Assembly: GCA_965202585.1 (NCBI GenBank) | Contig: OZ241827.1 | Location: 77,810,001 to 77,874,000 of the forward strand | DNA: 64,000 nucleotides | Direction: 5' to 3' | From: Thalia democratica | Taxonomy: Eukaryota | Part shown: piece after piece, positions 16,641-60,669 of the stretch | How positions within the stretch are numbered: position 1 is the stretch's first letter | Layout of the letters: each line of letters starts with the position of its first letter | Position numbers and translations under genes: made by a program | Notes under the pieces: generated by a model | Told to the model about the DNA's origin: nothing | Database searches by the model: none | The model's input: the letters and a program-made list of their open reading frames with translations, nothing else

Positions 16641-19600
16641 CAGAGTTCGGTCCAGGTCACTTTCGAGGGGATTTCCCCAGAAGCGTACCTTTCGACGGTT
16701 CACGGCAAATTTTTAGCGGCCCTCGGTGACATTCTTCCAAGGGGTTCGAACCCCAGTGAAAATGTGGAAATTTTATCCTTGAAACGCTTGAATGATTTCA
16801 ATGCGCAGCTGGTGTTCAGCGTGAGGTCGCCGAAGCGTGACGGCCAGTACCTGAAAGTCGGCCGCCAGCTGAAGGACTCGCTGCCGCTGCTCACCGAGAA
16901 GGCGGGGGTGAGGGTTACGGACGTCAGGGGGGAGGAGTGCGACCTCGAGTGCGCCCACGAGTGCCGGCACGACGTAGTTGTGACGTCATCAGGGGAAAGT
17001 CCCGTCACCACGAAAAAGTGGAGCTTGCTGACCCCTCATTGGTTCGAACGCGAGCAGAAGTGCGTGTGCCGGAAAGGTCATGCGGGTGTGAATTGCGCTT
17101 CCGTTTGCGCTGGAGTAACGGACGTGTGCGAGGAAGTTGGCGGAAAGTGCGAGCTGGACGCGAACGAGGTGCGAGGCTACCGGTGCGCGCAGAAGAACCG
17201 AAGGAACAGCGCGGTTTCTTTCGGGGGAAATTCCCTGATCGAGTACAAGCTGAACAACCCTGAAGTGTTCAGTTTGTCGCTGAGGTTCAGAACCCGGCAG
17301 CGCGACGCAAAACTGCTGGAGGCCGCGGAAGAGTCGGGAGGCAACTTGGCGCGCGTCAGCGTCGACGAAGGGAAACTGAAGCTGGAGTTCGCGTGCGGGT
17401 TGGACGGCGGAAACATGCAAACCATGGAAATGAGCGAGTCGGAAATGAGCGACGGAAACTGGCATGACGTCACAATCGAACCCATTTCCGACAAAGATTG
17501 CGCTTATAGGTATGAAGTTTTTATTAATATTTACCATTAAAATTTTTATCAAGATTTTAATTGTAAGTTCGTAAAAAACTTATGCTTGTTACTAGTAAGA
17601 TATACTAAGTGATAGTTTTCTGGCTTAGAGTTTTATATTAGCTGCTTACTCTTATTATAACAACTTTTATTAATGCTAAAACATAACTACAAAAGATTGC
17701 GCTTAGATGTATTTAGCTTTAGTTTTCTTTAATAGTTATTTAGTTCTTTATCAGTTAGTTTTATATGCTTTTCTTTGCTAACTGTTAAAAAGCATGCAAT
17801 GGATCTAATTTTACCAATCAAGTTACGACATGTTGTTGTAAATAAACATTTGCATGTACTATATATTGCTATATATTAACTATAACTAATTTTGATTATT
17901 CTAAATAAATTTTTACAGGTTGGTAGTAGACAGTAAATACGAGGCTACAGGAGCATTGGGTGAGAACAAAAAAAGAAAGTTGAAATTTGACAAACTTACA
18001 CTGGGAGGATTAGATAAAAATAATGATGGTATGATTGGATGCATTGAAGAAATTAAAATTAACCAAATTTTAATTCAAGATCTTCTTCATTACAATAAAT
18101 TGAGAATTACTAAGAAACAAGAAGTTCTTGATAGGTTAGTTTCTGTTTCTATACTCTTTATACGTTAGAAGAATATATGGTTATGCTAAATAAAAACTAT
18201 ACAAAATTCCTAATATGTTTTAAAAAAAAGTATAAATCTAACTATTTTGATGCAACATAGACATTTAGTTTTAATAAGATGAATTTCATTGAAGTATCAA
18301 TAAACAATATGTTAAAATCTACCTAATTTTTCAGATGTAGCATGGATATTGGGTCTTGCGTGAATCATTTTTGTTACAATGGCGGTAAATGCGGACTAGA
18401 CATGTCTTTGGAGGGAAATTCCCCAATATGCAAGTGTAGTTCGGGTTATGCAGGGCCTGATTGTCGCAAAACGAAGGTTTGTGAAGACTTGCCGTGTAAA
18501 AATAAAGGAATTTGCCATTCACAAGCTGTTGAAAGTTTTAGGTTGGTGAAATTTAAAATAGTTTTAGTTATTTCCTCAAGTATTCAATACTTTTATTAAT
18601 AAAAAAAAGCTTAATCTTTCTCCTGGAACTTTAAAGTTAGTAACTAACTGTTTTTCAGTTACATTTTACTAGTACAAAATATGTTTAGTAATTTATGTCA
18701 AAATAAAAAGATGGGTGAGCATACTTTTTACAAATATGAACTAAATGTTTTTATGAACTAGTTCTTTGCTCACTTTTAGCAATTAGTAGTACTTTACTAA
18801 TAGGATATAAAAACCATTAGTTTTATCATTATCACAGATGCGAATGTAAAGAAGGTTTTGGAGGAGAATTTTGTGACGTCATATGCAAGGAGGGGTTCAC
18901 CGGAGTGAATTGTGACGTCATAATAAATAAATGTTTCAGTTACGATGAAAATTTTGCTTGCAACTGCTCTTTATCAAATGAAGGTAAGCTTTTTTACTAT
19001 GGATATTTGCTTTGGATGTAGGAATATGTAACTACAAGCAACAAACTAATTTTGACTGCAAACATATTCTAAAATTTTTAATATGTAAAAAATTTGCTGC
19101 GAATAAACGTAAAATTTGAAGTTTTCATGAGAATTGCTTTAAACACTTTTTTTTCATAATATGTAAAGTTTATTCAAATAAAACATTATGTTATCTTTTT
19201 AAGACGTTATTTACTAATATTAAACATATATGCTTTTAAAAGCTTAAGACTTTAAAATTCAACAGCAGTATTATAATCAACTACCATAGTATAATTTGTT
19301 TAATATGGATTCTTAAAGACGACTTTATCACTTGTTTATTAAAACTAATCCTAATGTTTAAATAGGGATGTATTTTTGTCACGCAATATTTCTTTTTTTT
19401 TTATGTCACGCAAAAACTTATTAAATCTACTATTTATTGAAAAGTAATAATAAGAACGTAATAAAATACTATTTATTAACTGTATGTCTAAAAAAAGTAT
19501 AAAAAAGTAGCATAAAAAGTAGGTAGTTGAACTTGAAAAATTTACTAAAAAAAAGTTTAAACAATTGTAATTGTTTAAAATAGCTTATAAGTTCCAAGTT

Positions 19601-22600
19601 TAAAAATTTTAGCTAAAAATTCAAATCAACAAAATAATAATGATGCTAACAGGTTGCAAAACTATCCTAGAAAATCAGACCAACGCGAAGAAATCATCAT
19701 TTCCTTATTTAATCCTCATAATTGTCATTTTAATTGTCATAATCGTTGCCACCATAGCAACTGCAGTCGGCTGCTACGTAAGAAGGAGGCGAGGAAAAAA
19801 GATGCGAACCGGAAGTACTATTTCCACTAAAGAAAAGTTTTATTTGACACAACTGAAACACAGAGAAGGTTTGAATGGCTTACATTAATTAATTTTCAAG
19901 TTTAATTTTATATAAGTCTTTGAAGTTTAATTCATTAAAAGCAAAAATTTTAACGATCTATAAAATGATTTATTTCATAGATCACTCGTCAGATGGAAAC
20001 CAGTCGATTCCAAAGCCACCGATTCCTGCAAGACCGGTTGATTATCAGAGATGTTCAAGAGAAATTATTGACAGCATGGTTGAACAAGTAAATATAATTA
20101 TTGTTATATATTCAGTTCTTAGTTTACAGTTTGCATACTTCTAATTACTACAATTTAACTATTTAATTATCTGCTTTTAAAAAATTTTCAGTTGAAAACC
20201 AAAAATGAAATCAACAATTTATCATTAAAAAAATTAATTACATGTTTTAAAATAATTTTTAAGGAGCTAAAGAACAGGAAACAGTCAAATGACGTATTCG
20301 ACAAAAGTATGACGTCATTCCAGGACAATGAAAAATTGACGTCATACCAGGATAATGGAAAGCTGACGTCATTGGCTTCCGATTCAACTTCGTTTCAGAA
20401 AATTCCCATGTCTTGGACTGACTATGAGCACAATCATGTAAGTAATATAATTGTTAACACCAAAAATATTAGCTCAATTTGAAGTTGTTATTTCTGTTAA
20501 TTAATTATTATAGTTCACACCTGTAAACTGACACAATGGTTATTATATTATTTTAACTATAATTAAAAAAAAATACAATCTTTATATTTATAAGTATGAC
20601 TAAATAAAATTTTAAGTTATTGTAAGCTTTCACTGACTGTTCATTAAAACTATAATTTATTTTTTTAAGTAGATATTTAATTTCGTTTAAACAAAATGCT
20701 TCAACTAATTTTTAAACCATCACAGTTCAGCGGAAGTATATCTGGTTGTTCGTCTTACAGCAAAAGAACTCCGATCCCGTCTGCGAAATCACCGAAACTG
20801 TTCACCAGGATTCCCAGATTCCAGCAGCAGTCAGTTCACAAAGTAGCAAGCAAGCAGTCCATCGCAGAACAGCGTAAGTTTTATAACAGTAGTCGAGTAG
20901 TAGTCAGGCGTAGATTGATTCTTTATTAACTTTTTCAGTGGACTTTCTTGTTTTATATATTATTTTAATACACTTTTCTCTGTATTTTTAGCAGTGTTTT
21001 AGACTCTAATAATAATATGATTTTTTCGGAAAACATTTAAAAAAATCCAATAGTTTTTTTTAAAGCTTTTTTTTATTTGAAAAACATGTTAGTTCTCACT
21101 TTTTTAAATTCTTATAATGTAAAATTATCTTTAAGACTTGATCCCTTATCATGTATAATTGTTAATAAATTAATTCAATCACAGTTCTAAAATATTAACA
21201 GTATGTTAGCTAGACGTAGATATACACTGATTTTGTTTTAATTTTTCAGTAAACCTTTATAATTTTTAGATTTTCAAATTTTTAACATTTATTTTACTTT
21301 ATTGTATCTTTTGAAGAAATTTTTGATTCGTAACGTATTTTTATTACAAGATATACTTACAAGTTTAAAAATATTTAATATCTAATTTCAGTTCTAAACA
21401 AAGTTAAAGAAATATTAATTTTTGATTAGAACATCTTTAAAATGTAAATTTTGTAACTTTGTTTTTTTTTTCTCACTGTTTTCTCAACTAAAATTTGTTT
21501 AACCACAGTTTTGTAATTCTTAACAGTTGGAAGAAAACCAAAAAAATTGAATTTAGCAGAATTCAACCGTAATACAGGTCTATAAATAAAAAGCTTGGTT
21601 ATGGTGATTTTTGTACAAACTTAGTATGTACTTAAAAACGTGGTGTTAATCATTATGATAAAATAACTTCAACTGCCTTTTCTGAAATTATCTGAATTTT
21701 GAAAGTTACTTGTTTATGTTAATTTTTAAAATCTTTAACATGAAAGACTTGTTAAAATTACATAAAACATTGAAAAATAATTTTAATTTCATATAGTTAG
21801 GTATATCCAGTTATAAGCTTTTGCTTTATGTTTCAAAATTTAAGTATAAGTATGTCAACTATTATTATCTATCCTGTTATACTTAGTGGTTTTACATCTG
21901 TTGTACTGTTGTTTGTTTCTAAGTTTCATTTTAAAACTTTTATCTAAATGAAAAATTTCTAAGTTTACCATGGTTATTAAAAAAAAATGTGTTAATTTAT
22001 CTGGCTTCAAAAATTTTAGTTTTTATTCTAAACGTATTTTTTTAAACTCAAATGATAACACTTATTTTAACTGCCTTTTATTTTTAGCATGTAAATTATT
22101 AAGTTGTGATGAATTTCATTTTTCGTTCAAAACAAAAGTTATTAATGGTTTTATTAAGTTGTTATTTTGTAATTCGAAATATAACTTGTTACTTTTGTTA
22201 CGAAATCTCAAAGCATCTTGATAAATCTCATAGCATGTGGTTTTTGCATGTGTATTATCATGTAACTTGCATTTATTTCAGTATGTTATATCAGGTTTTT
22301 CTAAACATGTTTATCTTTTTTACAAGAAGTTGTTTTATTAATTGCATATTTTGAAAAGAAAATTAGTTATCTCAATAATTATTAAAAAGATTCTTAAGAA
22401 CCCATTAACTTTTTAAACTCAATGATAAAATGTTAACTTTTTATGTTTAACTTAAAAAGAAACTTAAAAAAAGTTGTAAAAGTTTCTAAAACTCAATTAT
22501 AAAATTTGACGAATCCTTTTTAATACTTAAATAATCTTATTCACCAGATTACGCATGGGACGTTTCTGATTGGATTAAAAACAACTCGTCGGCGGCCAAT

Positions 22601-23483
22601 CACGTTCCTGAACATGTGACGTCAGTACCAGTGAGGCTGAACAACAGATCCGACGGTGTTACGTCATCAAACAATCGCGTGACGTCACATTACAATTTGG
22701 CTGGGAGAAAACCGAAAAGGAAGGGGAGAAAATGCAGCGACGCTTCCACAACAGATTCAAAACTGGTTTGTATAAATTTATAAACTTAAAAAGTTATATA
22801 AGTCTAAACATATATATCTAGACATAAAATAGACAATTAAATTGGAAAAAAAATTAACATTTGAAGCTTTTATATTATAAGTATATAAATATTTACGTAA
22901 GTTACAAGTCAAGATCATTAAATGACAAAGTAATTATTTATTAGTTTTGATTCGAGTATTTATATTTTCAAACCAGATACGTCATCCGCAAGACGACGAA
23001 AGCTCCCAGTATGACGTCAGTAGCGAGGTTACGACGGCTGCCAGGCAACCCGGGCGCTTATTACGTAGCAACTATGACGTCACCAACCCCCGATTCGAAC
23101 CTTCGAACCTCCTGCCATCCGTTTCCATGGAGCACGAGCGTTTCTCATTGGACGAAAAAATCTCTGAGGCCTCGGAGGATTTCTATGGCGACACGGACGA
23201 GTACGAAATTTCCGCTCCGATGCCCACCGACATTATGACGTCACTTTTGGAGGGCGAGATGGAGGTGGACATGCCGACTCCGGCGAGGGCGCGCAAAAAC
23301 AAGTTTCACCCCGACCAGTACCTGCCCGCCGTCGTCACCATGGCAACCAGTTCCTCGTCGTCGGTCGACGGTGACGTCACTGTCCAGTTGCTTGGCAACC
23401 AGCTGCAGATGTCGTCGCTTTCCGACTTGGAAGAAGATGACGTCAACAATTCGTTGATGTTACGTCATAATGACAACGCTTGA
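24..23483 (+). CDS. FAT1: Fat-type atypical giant cadherin (FAT1/2/3-kugelei group), copy A; 47 exons in window, 5' end outside window, two apparent 1-bp frameshifts (about 3386 and 9827)
   Basis: Manual splicing with GT-AG introns gives phase-compatible exons encoding many cadherin repeats (DxNDNxP, LDRE/LDYE, DxDxG), then a Cys-rich region, LamG, EGFs, TM and tail. The tail has KPPIPARPVDY, YAWDVSDW and FHPDQYLP, which I recall as close to FAT1/3 PPQVPVRPISY, YHWDTSDW and NQYLP. The symbol denotes the FAT1/2/3 group, not proven 1:1 orthology. Confidence 0.9.
16384..17509 (+). CDS. Large GC-rich exon 38: last cadherin repeat, membrane-proximal Cys-rich/EGF-like region and first half of the laminin G domain
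   Basis: tttcag acceptor at 16383, AG|gtatga donor at 17509, 1126 nt open. Contains CVCRKGHAGVNC and SFGGNSLIEY...LSLRFRTRQRDAKLL...SDGNWHDVTI (LamG pattern). Matches ORF 16401..17540. Confidence 0.9.
17919..18134 (+). CDS. Exon 39: C-terminal half of the laminin G domain
   Basis: LVVDSKY...LTLGG...GMIGCIEEIKIN is the typical LamG C-terminal pattern. Phase 2-2 boundaries are compatible with both neighbours. Confidence 0.85.
18335..18983 (+). CDS. EGF-like exons 40 (18335-18541) and 41 (18838-18983)
   Basis: CVNHFCYNGGKC...CKCSSGYAGPDC, CEDLPCKNKGIC...CECKEGFGGEFC; GT-AG boundaries in compatible phases. Confidence 0.9.
18845..18922 (+). repeat. 39-bp coding tandem duplication (CKEGFGGEFCDVI / CKEGFTGVNCDVI)
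   Basis: Two adjacent 39-nt units, each ending in tgtgacgtcata. Confidence 0.85.
19653..19868 (+). CDS. Exon 42: transmembrane helix and basic stop-transfer
   Basis: FPYLILIIVILIVIIVATIATAVGCYV followed by RRRRGKK; aacag acceptor and G|gtttga donor. Confidence 0.92.
19981..23483 (+). CDS. Cytoplasmic-tail exons 43-47 (19981-20087, 20264-20437, 20726-20873, 22548-22765, 22977-23483)
   Basis: All five exons splice in frame to the TGA at 23481-23483. They contain KPPIPARP, YAWDVSDW and FHPDQYLP. Confidence 0.85.
20309..20389 (+). repeat. 27-bp coding tandem repeat, 3 units (MTSFQDNEK / LTSYQDNGK / LTSLASDST)
   Basis: TGACGTCA recurs at 20310, 20337 and 20364, exactly 27 nt apart. Units 1 and 2 are near-identical. 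Confidence 0.8.
21527..21577 (+). CDS. Candidate 51-nt phase 1-1 cassette exon in the cytoplasmic tail (L-GRKPKKLNLAEFNRNT-D)
   Basis: ttcttaacag acceptor and CAG|gtctat donor; 17 codons with no stop, frame-preserving between exons 45 and 46. There is no transcript evidence and the intronic part of the donor is weak. Confidence 0.5.
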
Positions 23484-23555
23484 AAAACTTTACTTTTGAG
23501 AAACATTCCCTCTTTTCTCGTTTTCAGTGTCGAAGTATTTTTTGCTGCTGCTTGA

Positions 23556-23565
23556 AATAAATAAA
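23556..23565 (+). terminator. Overlapping AATAAA polyadenylation signals of copy A (candidate)
   Basis: aataaataaa about 75 nt after the stop codon. AATAAA is common in this AT-rich DNA, so the site actually used is uncertain. Confidence 0.45.
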
Positions 23566-26215
23566 AGTTTTAATGAAAGCAGCTTGACGGAAAGCCTTTT
23601 AATTTTTGCTGTTATTTGAGGCTTCATTTTTTAATTACTTTAAATATAAAGCTTACATTTTGACATACAAAAGATTTACCTTTTCTAAATAATTTTTCAG
23701 TTACCTTTTATAAATAAAATAGCGTTTTTGTTACTAAGTACTTTTTTCTGTTGTTCAGTTTTTTAAATCAGTTTTTTACAGTAAAGTTACTAAGGTACTC
23801 TCTAGTTTTTTCATCATCCTGTTAATTCAAATAAAAGTGCCGGGAAAAAAATTTCAAATATTCAAGAAGTTTGAATATGTGGGTATTTGTTAATCGAACA
23901 TGAGTTTATGTTATATGTGTATTGTGACTGTTTCAAAATTGTGATGTTAAACAAATAAACACAAATCATCTAAATAGTTTTTTATTTATACTGTAAGTCT
24001 TTTGATTTTTTTTAGTTGTTTATATGTTTAACATTTGATAACGAATATTAAGATACCTAACTGGTTTAAGCTTATAGGCATATTTGAAAACTGCATGATT
24101 TAGGTTGAACATTATTATAATTTTATTTCAGTGTTAAATTTATATAAAACAACTATTAAATAAATTGTTTTAATTTACTCTCAATAAATTAAGCTATTTT
24201 ATACTCTTGTTTCAATTTAAATTGAAGTTTAAACCACTTTATGTTGCAAGTTTTCTTTTGAAAGTAATAACTGAACATAAACTTCTAAAATCTGTTCAAA
24301 CTCATTAATATTAAGTCGCTAGAAGACTATAATGAAAAGAAGAATGACTTTTGTTTTTTTAATTTAAAGCACGTTTTGAGACTAAAAAGATTTATTTCAA
24401 GTTTTCTTAACCCTTAATTCAAACACTATTGGCTAACTTTTCAGTTATACTTGGTCGATTTTGAAAGGAATTTATACTGTCAAATTATGTAGTGAGAAAT
24501 AAAACATCGATATTCTTTCGGTTTGCACTTAAACTAGTTTGACCTTTTGGTTAGTTCGTTTGTTATGCTGTAAAGTTGAACCCCTTTTGATCTTAAATAA
24601 AACCTGTCAAGTTATACTTTGATTACTAAAAATAATTTTCGAACTGCAAAATAAATTACTTGAATATTGAAACTAGTAACATCTAGTAATAAAGTGTTTA
24701 AAATCAAGATTTTAAAACAAACTAAAACTTTTATTTGGCTTTGGTATACGTGTAACACAGTTATAATCGTTTTATTTCTGTAAAAAGTTCTTTATATTGA
24801 TTGTCAAGAAATAAAAACCAAAATAACCTTTTTGTTACCTGAAAAAAAAACATCTAAACACCAACTTAATCACATTATTAATTTTTAAATACGTTGATTA
24901 GAAAGTTAGGTTCCATACGCAATTATAACGTTCTAAAGTCTTCTTGGAAGAATTTATTTATAAAAATATCAAGGACTTCGATGGTTTGTCACAAGAAACG
25001 AATATAAACATGTATAAAGAATCGAAATGGTTAGTTTATTTTTGTTACAGTTTGAAATGTATATAGGAAAAAACTAAATAAACATTAAATTTCTACTTTT
25101 TTGTTAAACCCAATTAATTTTTTAAATGGTTGTTAATAATAAAAATTTGTGTTTCATGATATGCTAAATATTACATTTTTTAATTTTTAGTACTATAATT
25201 TATTGATTAAGTTTTTTTATTGCTATTTTGTAATTAAAGTTTATTAAACTTTTTATTCACTCTTTTTTTTTAAATTTTACCTGAAATGTTTTCGTAGTTT
25301 GAACTTTTATTTAACTTTGCATTCAACGTTTTGATTATTATAGTTATTTTTTTTCCCAGAACCAAAATTTCTAAAACTTAACTATAAACAAAATTAAACT
25401 TTACAATCATGACGTAGAACTTAACATGCTTAAAAACTTCTAAAAGTTTGTGGTTTCATTTTTACTTAGTAAATAGACATTTGAACTTGAATAAAGTTTT
25501 GTAGGAGTGTACTTTGTACAATTATCAAATAGTTAAAAAAATGAAAATAAAATTAAGTCAACTTAGTATGTAGATAATTTTAAAGACTTTGAATTTATAG
25601 TAAATAAGAGATAATTTGCAATTATTTAGCAAACAACTTATTTTTCAACAAGTTTAATTTTTAATAAAAATTTAGTAAACATTTTAAACGCTAAAATTAA
25701 CATTTGTTTTTTTTTTGATACTACGCTTAAAATGTAAACTTTTAAAACAGAATGAAATTCTACCCATTCAATTGAAGGCTTATGAAAAATGCGAGAGAAT
25801 TTATTTGAGAGAAATTAAAAAAAATAAACGAAATGAAGCATAACATACTCTGCCGGGAGTTTTATGGTTGTAAACTACAAAGAACAAAATATGTTTCAGT
25901 GTTCACGGTATCTTAAATTAAACATTAATCATTACAAAGTAAACGTTCGAAGTTTGGTTTAATCGACTTAAATATAAAACGTCTCGTTCTTTATAAAAAA
26001 AATATGTTTCTATTTTACAAGTTAAAATTTTTTTTTTTCTCAACATCATAAATTAACAAAACATTGTTTTATAAATAAACATTTTAGACTTTCTCAAAAT
26101 AAGCATGTTACGCCATAAGGCTTAAAACTTCCAACAATCTCCTAAACCTTTTACTAGCACTTTAATATAGTTTTTTAAACAAATGCATTTTTCATCAAAG
26201 ATCTAAACAAAGCAG

Positions 26216-58600: not shown

Positions 58601-60669
58601 ATATTAAATCTTGATTAGAACATCTTTAAAATGTAAGTTTTGTAACTTTGTTTTTTTTTTCTCACTGTTTTCTTAACTAAAATTTGTTTAACCACAGTTT
58701 TGTAATTCTAAACAGTTGGAAGAAAACCAAAAAAATTGAATTTAGCAGAATTCAACCGTAATACAGGTCTATAAATAAAAAGCTTGGTTATGGTGATTTT
58801 TGTACAAACTTAGCATGTACTCAAAAACGTGGTGTTAATCATTATAATAAAATAACTTCAACTGCTTTTTCTGAAATTATCTGAATTTTGAAAGTTACTT
58901 GTTTATGTTAACTTTCAAAATCTTTAACATGAAAGACCTGTTAAAATTACATAAAACATTGAAAAATAATTTTGATTTCATATAGTTAGGTATATCTAGT
59001 TATAAGCTTTTGCTTTATGTTTCAAAATTTAAGTATAAGTATGTCAACCATTATTATCTATCCTGTTATACTTAGTGGTTTTACATCTGTTGTACTGTTG
59101 TTTGTTTCTAAGTTTTATTTTAAAACTTTCATCTAAATAAAAAATTTCTAAGTTTACCATGGTTATTAAAAAAAAATGTGTTAATTTATCTGGCTTCAAA
59201 AATTTTAGTTTTTATTCTAAACGTATTTTTTTAAACTCAAATGATAACACTTATTTTAACTGCCTTTTATTTTTAGCATGTAAATTATTAAGTTGTGATG
59301 AATTTCATTTTTCGTTCAAAACAAAAGTTATTAATGGTTTTATTAGATTGTTATTTTGTAATTCGAAATATAACTTGTTACTTTTGTTACGAAATCTCAA
59401 AGCATGTTGATAAATCTCATAGCATGTGGTTTTTGCATGTGTATTATCATGTAACTTGCATTTATTTCAGTATGTTATATTAGGTTTTTCTATACATGTT
59501 TATTTTTTTTACAAGAAGTTGTTTTATTAATTGCATATTTTGAAAAGAAAATTAGTTTAAATAATTATTAAAAAGATTCTTAAGAACCCATTAACTTTTT
59601 AAACTCAATGATAAAATGTTAACATTTTATGTTTAACTTAAAAAGAAACTTTAAAAAAGTTGTAAAAGTTTCTAAAACTCAATTATAAAATTTGACGAAT
59701 CCTTTTAAATACTTAAATAATTTTGTTCACCAGATTACGCATGGGACGTTTCTGATTGGATTAAAAACAACTCGTCGGCGGCCAATCACGTTCCTGAACA
59801 CGTGACGTCAGTACCAGTGAGGCTGAACAACAGATCCGACGGTGTTACGTCATCAAACAATCGCGTGACGTCACATTACAACTTGGCTGGGAGAAAACCG
59901 AAAAGGAAGGGGAGAAAATGCAGCGACGCTTCCACAACAGATTCAAAACTGGTTTGTATAAATTTATAAACTTAAAAAGTTTTATAAGTATAAATATATA
60001 TATCTAGACACAAAATAGACAAGTTATTGTTGATAAAACTAAACATTTGAAGCTTTTATATAATAAGTATATAAATATTTACGTAAGTTACAAGTCAAGA
60101 TCATTAAATGACAAAGTAATTATTTATTAGTTTTGATTCGAGTATTTATTTTTTCAAACCAGATACGTCATCCGCAAGACGACGAAAGCTCCCAGTATGA
60201 CGTCAGTAGCGAGGTTACGACGGCTGCCAGGCAACCCGGGAGCTTATTACGTAGCAGCTATGACGTCACCAACCCCCGATTCGAACCTTCGAACTTCCCG
60301 CCATCCGTTTCCATGGAGCACGAGCGTTTCTCATTGGACGAAAAAATCTCTGAGGCCTCGGAGGATTTCTATGACGACACGGACGAGTACGAAATTTCCG
60401 CTCCGATGCCCACCGACATTATGACGTCACTTTTGGAGGGCGAGATGGAGGTGGACATGCCGACTCCGGCGAGGGCGCGCAAAAACAAGTTTCACCCCGA
60501 CCAGTACCTGCCCGCCGTCGTCACCATGGCAACCAGTTCCTCGTCGTCGGTCGACGGTGACGTCACTGTCCAGTTGCTTGGCAACCAGCTGCAGATGTCG
60601 TCGCTTTCCGACTTGGAAGAAGATGACGTCAACAATTCGTTGATGTTACGTCATAATGACAACGCTTGA
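55630..60669 (+). CDS. Orphan Fat EGF-TM-cytoplasmic-tail exon set; intact spliced ORF of 571 aa from ATG 55637 (expression unknown)
   Basis: Exons 55630-55836, 56025-56170, 56841-57056, 57168-57274, 57451-57624, 57912-58059, 59734-59951 and 60163-60669 are all phase-compatible. They total 1716 nt from the ATG to the TGA with no internal stop. Confidence 0.7.
58716..58766 (+). CDS. Copy of the candidate 51-nt cassette exon in module 1
   Basis: Identical to 21527-21577 with the same aacag and G|gtctat boundaries. Confidence 0.45.

Follow-up and report, generated by a model that had tools for sequence, protein, structure and literature searches.

A 51-nt optional exon in the predicted tail of a tunicate Fat-like cadherin

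Introduction

Does an optional exon interrupt the tail that a tunicate Fat-like cadherin extends into the cytoplasm at the junction where the tails of vertebrate Fat1 and Fat3 receive inserts, and how old might such an arrangement be? The question was raised by one intron in a window of 64,000 nucleotides (AT-rich animal DNA, 28% G+C, no N), for which the earlier note, made from the letters of the window alone, had proposed a hidden symmetric cassette exon. The segment was followed here in RNA contigs, in ten tandem copies of the tail region and against the published splicing of the vertebrate genes. We put a probability of roughly 80% on the reading that it is a genuine, frame-preserving cassette exon of 51 nt in the tail of a tunicate Fat-like cadherin which, by analogy, would switch the partners and localisation of that tail.

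Position and reading frame of the segment

Positions are those of the window throughout, and all features lie on the + strand. The intron that hosts the segment measures 1674 nt between exon ends at 20873 and 22548. The constitutive tail exon upstream (20726–20873) ends FQQQSVHKVASKQSIAEQ in phase 1 (GAA CAG C|) with the donor agc|GTAAGT, and was defined by its translation and by the RNA joint 20437>20726. The constitutive exon downstream (22548–22765) opens with |AT TAC GCA TGG GAC, reads (H/D)YAWDVSDW at its start, contains the basic cluster LAGRKPKRKGRK and is delimited by the RNA joints 20873>22548, 21577>22548 and 22765>22977. Recomputation of coordinates and frame reproduced the segment that had been pointed out in this 1.67-kb intron before the YAWDVSDW exon: 51 nt at 21527–21577, with AG at 21525–21526 before it and GT at 21578–21579 after it, phase 1-1 and stop-free. 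With a length divisible by three and no stop in the frame used, it preserves the reading frame and adds 17 residues. Skipping yields AEQ-H-YAWDVSDW and inclusion yields AEQ-LGRKPKKLNLAEFNRNT-DYAWDVSDW, the junction residue changing from H to D.

The acceptor region (21486–21526) reads TTGTAATTCTTAACAG, with three variable columns among ten copies of the tail and AG in all of them. The donor, CAG|GTCTAT, is weak relative to GTAAGT; other confirmed donors of the gene are also non-consensus.

Two properties of the segment were considered as evidence for an exon and set aside. AG/GT boundaries, a stop-free frame and phase 1-1 are at chance level, the intron containing 36 such segments of 18–300 nt (21 of them at least 51 nt long) vs 31 ± 10 in shuffled introns. 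An identical copy does lie in a second module of the window (58716–58766), as comparison of the two sequences confirmed; the two modules are 97–98% identical throughout, and an identical 51-mer is therefore uninformative by itself.

Splicing in environmental RNA

The sequencing-run search returned four RNA runs, all of them marine metatranscriptomes (one study, two samples), and DNA runs of two organisms. Assembled RNA contigs were placed on positions 17800–23600 of the window. Five other introns of the tail were spliced out of these contigs with GT..AG ends and depth over introns was near 0, so the contigs were taken to represent mRNA. The joint that skips the cassette (20873>22548, GT..AG) was found in runs X1 (depth 17.8), X2 (127.2) and X3 (485.9). 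The two joints that include it (20873>21527 and 21577>22548, both GT..AG) were found in X2 (depth 78.5) and X3 (245.2), a joint reported as 21574>22545 being the same as 21577>22548 after a stated shift of +3. Both junctions by which the earlier note had proposed to check its cassette were thus recovered from metatranscriptome contigs, together with the skip junction.

Depths of inclusion and skipping summed to 205.7 in X2 and 731.1 in X3, in line with 188.6/173.6 and 688.5/683.5, respectively, for contigs of the flanking exons. Inclusion amounted to ~38% in X2 and ~34% in X3, which are runs of one sample; the shallower sample showed skipping only. Junction sides were 28–31 nt at a 90% likeness threshold, and short-sided joints in metagenomes can be spurious; sides of this length are what is expected from a k=31 assembly bubble at a splice site. 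None of the other 32 independent look-alike segments of the intron was present in the RNA. The cassette exon at 21527–21577 is real and is optionally used.

RNA of the sample with inclusion differed from the window by 2–8% in some exons and carried letters absent from all ten copies. Judged by these differences, it appears to come from a diverged strain or a sister species, which argues that use of the exon is conserved. At 22615 and 22696 all RNA matched other copies and not the window copy, and assignment of the RNA to one copy gave a negative result, none of the ten explaining all of its letters. On this comparison, the RNA evidence for exon use holds at the level of the gene family, and not demonstrably for the window copy.

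Three further features of the RNA were recorded. RNA of sample S2 was without one 27-nt repeat unit (window 20310) in the tail exon 20264–20437 and showed in-frame length differences of 3 nt and 6 nt in the last exon (23018 and 23196–23198). The repeats of the tail differ in copy number between lineages. A joint at 18132–18336 had non-canonical AG..GA ends and three extra letters (CAG) in contigs 7% diverged from the window; the probable cause is a splice site that has shifted, or an offset alignment, in a lineage that has diverged.

Invariance across the tandem array

Searching the 802-Mb genome located ten copies of the tail region (L001–L010) in a tandem array on one chromosome (C2:77.58–77.99 Mb), of which the window is part. 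The copies lie ~38 kb apart, with one extra repeat of 6.3 kb, and are 93–97% identical. Conservation was measured among these ten paralogous copies of one genome. Variable columns made up 16–19% of introns and 6% of flanking exons; the cassette had 0. Absence of conservation above intronic background, which had been named as grounds for rejecting the cassette, was therefore not what the paralogous copies showed. The invariant run extends over 82 columns (21525–21606), taking in the AG, the exon, the donor GTCTAT and 29 nt of intron (weak donor and invariant downstream stretch, 21578–21606), and is the longest invariant run of the 5.1-kb alignment, constitutive exons included. It belongs to a conserved island of ~120 nt. 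Among the 36 look-alike segments of the intron, those that are invariant are all nested in the cassette exon, and invariant non-coding windows of 55 columns make up 1.3% overall and 0.5% away from the cassette.

The two exons that flank the cassette intron gave pN/pS of 0.13 at pS of 0.039 across the ten copies, and on that ratio the exons do not look like products of free drift. Because of this value, the comparison of paralogs is read as reflecting constraint. An open frame was kept in nine of the ten tails. Deletions were noted in two copies: L005 has lost 4 nt (20845–20848); in L008, 9 nt are missing in frame from the transmembrane exon, and the last exon carries a large deletion. An origin of the cassette from a dispersed repeat or transposon was considered and rejected, the 121-nt block being found only in the ten tandem copies. 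The genome search found no older paralog carrying the same exon.

It is the spliced RNA junctions together with complete invariance across ten paralogous copies that place the cassette above chance. The weak donor, the usable acceptor and the conserved island fit regulated rather than constitutive use.

Downstream of the cassette, the intron contains GCATG at 22087, 22233 and 22245 (one of them a full TGCATG), all kept in the ten copies. The RBFOX-type words GCATG and TGCATG at 22233–22250, 13 nt apart, are inside a 52-nt invariant intronic run, and TGCATG is expected 0.15 times per intron from base composition. The pair is a possible splicing regulatory element. An RNA hairpin sequestering the donor was also sought; the predicted stem spans the donor and the conserved downstream block and was not significant (z = −1.5; 17 of 200 shuffles did equally well).

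Identity of the gene and of its host

Exons at 14.9–18.5 kb, just upstream of the tail, gave Cadherin, Laminin_G_2 and EGF matches, and the exon at 19653–19868 encodes a hydrophobic, transmembrane segment. From this predicted architecture (cadherin repeats, laminin-G, EGF, transmembrane segment and a long tail), the gene is identified as a tunicate Fat-like cadherin. According to the earlier note, the vertebrate tail motif continues as WDTSDW. The tunicate tail has Y-A-W-D vs Y-H-W-D, and HWD is reported to be a signature of Fat-like tails that is absent from Fat/Ds/CELSR (PMC7430989).

Database searches were run exon by exon, and joined exons served solely for translations, counts of stops and pN/pS. 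Those that could have linked the tail to named Fat proteins gave no match, Pfam assigned no family to the tail exons, and a word search with the YAWD exon for relatives in other species was likewise without a match. Five to seven relatives of the tail were obtained by last-exon and full profile searches, all of them last-exon ORFs or fragments from marine metagenomes. The contigs that carry them do not extend as far as the cassette, and one of the ORFs ends NTEV. Scanning JGI metagenomes for tail relatives returned nothing, and the Atlas search for them returned no usable match. By these sequence comparisons the tail appears to be fast-evolving. One marine metagenome contig (L012; 2260 nt) has a last exon 96% identical to that of the window and was called with a 40-residue extension beyond the position of the window's stop codon, which points to a changed stop or an artefact of the caller.

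The 14,120-bp contig C1833 (L017, L018) is the mitochondrial genome. Almost all of its predicted tRNA genes are on one strand, and they include tRNA-Met(UAU) and both UCU and GCU tRNAs. AGA/AGG codons of its COX1 fall at glycines of mammalian COX1 that are universally conserved, those of GGGDP and of the G-F-G motif among them. AGR read as Gly is the ascidian mitochondrial code, and the host was identified as a tunicate because of this usage. Broken copies of COX1 with many stops, nuclear mitochondrial inserts, occur at C4:56.84–56.94 Mb and C757:31.3–32.1 kb. A whole-genome, six-frame, exon-wise search for cellulose synthase (PF03552) and GH6 (PF01341) gave no matches; this was taken as a limit of searching exon by exon or as ill-fitting Pfam models, yet it counts against a tunicate host. 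A search for the arthropod cuticle domain, another marker family for the host, was negative too. Tunicates are the sister group of vertebrates.

Comparison with vertebrate Fat1 and Fat3

In mouse Fat1 and Fat3, alternative splicing takes place at a junction that splits a conserved DNxYH motif (PMC5082931). The Fat3 insert of 32 residues is encoded by exons 24.1 (56 bp) and 24.2 (40 bp) and isolates an essential Tyr from the rest of the Kif5-interaction domain; this +32 insert abolishes Kif5B binding and alters delivery in MDCK cells and neurons (PMC5082931). A guide RNA ending GAT GAC AA (DDN) was described as 'adjacent to the splice donor' of Fat3 exon 24, and Fat3 isoforms switch during neuron maturation (PMC8865054). 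The Fat1 event consists of a 36-nt penultimate exon (+12) that is co-activated by RBPMS, MBNL, RBFOX2 and QK (PMC12721327). Inserts of both genes disrupt the Kif5-interaction or 'PTB-like' motif and change localisation (PMC5082931, PMC8865054, PMC12721327).

The tunicate junction falls in the codon before the Y of HYAWDVSDW. The claim of the earlier note that the cassette occupies the site of the FAT1(+12) exon held with that resolution: the position agrees with the published Fat1/Fat3 junction, the vertebrate DDN|xYH site, to within one codon. The vertebrate FAT1 +12 exon is, according to the earlier note, of phase 1.

Like Fat1(+12), the cassette is a frame-preserving optional exon in a Fat-like cytoplasmic tail, directly preceding the Tyr that is conserved in (DN)xY(H)WD, and both isoforms are co-expressed. 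Unlike Fat1(+12), which has 36 nt and 12 residues and is a penultimate exon, it has 51 nt and 17 residues, and one more intron follows the YAWD exon; the vertebrate DDN is replaced by AEQ, and effects on localisation are known from vertebrates only. With the Fat3 +32 insert it shares the junction and the parting of the essential Tyr from the motif upstream. Two obligate small exons (56 + 40 nt) form the Fat3 insert, in contrast to the one tunicate exon, and developmentally regulated use is a property of Fat3. In the tunicate, the upstream exon end QQQSVHKVASKQSIAEQ has no DDN and only a loose, S/Q-rich resemblance to the Kif5-ID consensus Q(S/T)xxSxQxxxxD(D/G)xxY, which is not recognisable there. 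The functional analogy is weak, since the tunicate tail, with AEQ, has not kept the N-terminal half of the Kif5 motif (DDN, Q-S/T-x-x-S-x-Q).

Origin of the exon and alternative readings

How the exon came to lie at this junction can be read in two ways, both of which concern origin. We give close to even odds to independent exonisation: in this reading the intron before the Tyr is ancestral, and tunicates acquired their optional exon on their own, perhaps by partial copying of the stretch that encodes GRKPK in the exon that follows. The tunicate gene and vertebrate Fat1/Fat3 would in that case have converged on a junction that is tolerant and functionally sensitive, which is compatible with the proposed mechanism. 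Consistent with exonisation, a sequence relation to the vertebrate inserts is not established, lengths differ (51 nt vs 36 in Fat1 and 56 + 40 in Fat3), and the tail is fast-evolving, with few relatives, all of the last exon. The cassette (21529–21545) and the downstream exon (22706–22722) also have an in-frame GRKPK in common, with 15 of 17 nt matching and the differences synonymous; its score of 24 exceeds the maximum of 23 in 300 shuffles. Partial duplication may have left this match, or it may be due to chance, being short and A-rich. Against exonisation, the same type of event occurs at the same junction before the same Tyr in sister groups, for which common descent is at least as economical.

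Common descent would make an optional interruption before the Tyr of Y-x-WD-x-SDW an ancestral regulatory switch of Fat-like cadherins that tunicates and vertebrates have both retained and that may be older still. This is held tentatively, as the less expected outcome; an ancient shared site, as the earlier note had suggested, is plausible. As the host is a tunicate, of the sister group of vertebrates, 'ancient' at present means the tunicate-vertebrate ancestor and no deeper. If the switch is ancestral, the sequence of the inserted peptide could vary freely.

The two spliced forms might instead come from different genes, some copies always including the cassette and others always skipping it. 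The ten copies leave room for this, several of them seeming to supply RNA since no single copy explains all letters, and the acceptor tract varies slightly, reading TTCTTAACAG in the window copy, TCCTAAAAAG in a single copy and TTCTAAACAG in the other eight. Contigs do not tie the junctions to letters of a particular copy. However, no copy differs from the others in the exon, the AG, the donor or the 29 nt downstream, the differences in the pyrimidine tract are single bases, and we consider paralog-specific splicing improbable.

Little credence is likewise given to the suggestion, made in the earlier note, that the insert is NLS-like and would supply a nuclear localisation signal to a cleaved Fat tail. 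The insert does contain RKPKK, which gives the long form a second basic patch besides GRKPKRKGRK, a constitutive cluster 60 residues further on. However, LGRKPKKLNLAEFNRNT is without K-K/R-x-K/R, both RKPK and KPKK failing this strict consensus; the stronger basic cluster, in the next exon, is constitutive and present in both isoforms; the patches are much too far apart to form a bipartite signal, and there is no evidence of tail cleavage. That part of the note is not supported.

Functionless splicing noise is very improbable: the cassette resembles the chance pseudo-exons of long AT-rich introns in being AG/GT-bounded and stop-free with a poor donor (GTCTAT), one of 36 segments equivalent by sequence criteria, but unlike the 35 others it is included in about one third of transcripts at high depth and invariant across ten paralogs, in the most conserved stretch of the 5.1-kb region, above constitutive exons.

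Proposed mechanism and significance

A genuine cassette exon in the Fat-like tail, our preferred reading, suggests the following mechanism. An exon with a usable acceptor and a weak donor would be open to regulated use, and in one natural sample roughly one transcript in three includes it. Inclusion is predicted to put 17 residues and the H-to-D change directly in front of the Tyr conserved in Y-x-W-D-x-S-D-W, and the site corresponds, to within one codon, to the junction where the vertebrate inserts separate this Tyr from the Kif5-interaction or PTB-like motif upstream. By analogy, inclusion would switch the binding of motors or adaptors and the subcellular distribution of the tail; it is by this analogy that we infer a switch of partner binding and localisation by the tunicate cassette. 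The logic may be inverted in the tunicate, the N-x-x-Y and acidic NRNTDY of the insert being nearer to the uninterrupted vertebrate DDNxY than is AEQHY of the short form. The conserved intronic (U)GCAUG pair could tie the cassette to the RBFOX control reported for rat Fat1.

In Fat1 and Fat3, splicing of the tail at one junction decides kinesin-1 binding and the position of the protein in migrating cells and neurons, and in the literature searched it has been described in vertebrates only. The tunicate exon, optional and at this same junction, adds a second, distant data point. It also illustrates that unannotated micro-exons can be recovered from sequence and environmental RNA. Either the switch was already present in the tunicate-vertebrate ancestor, if not earlier, or inserts have arisen at this junction repeatedly.
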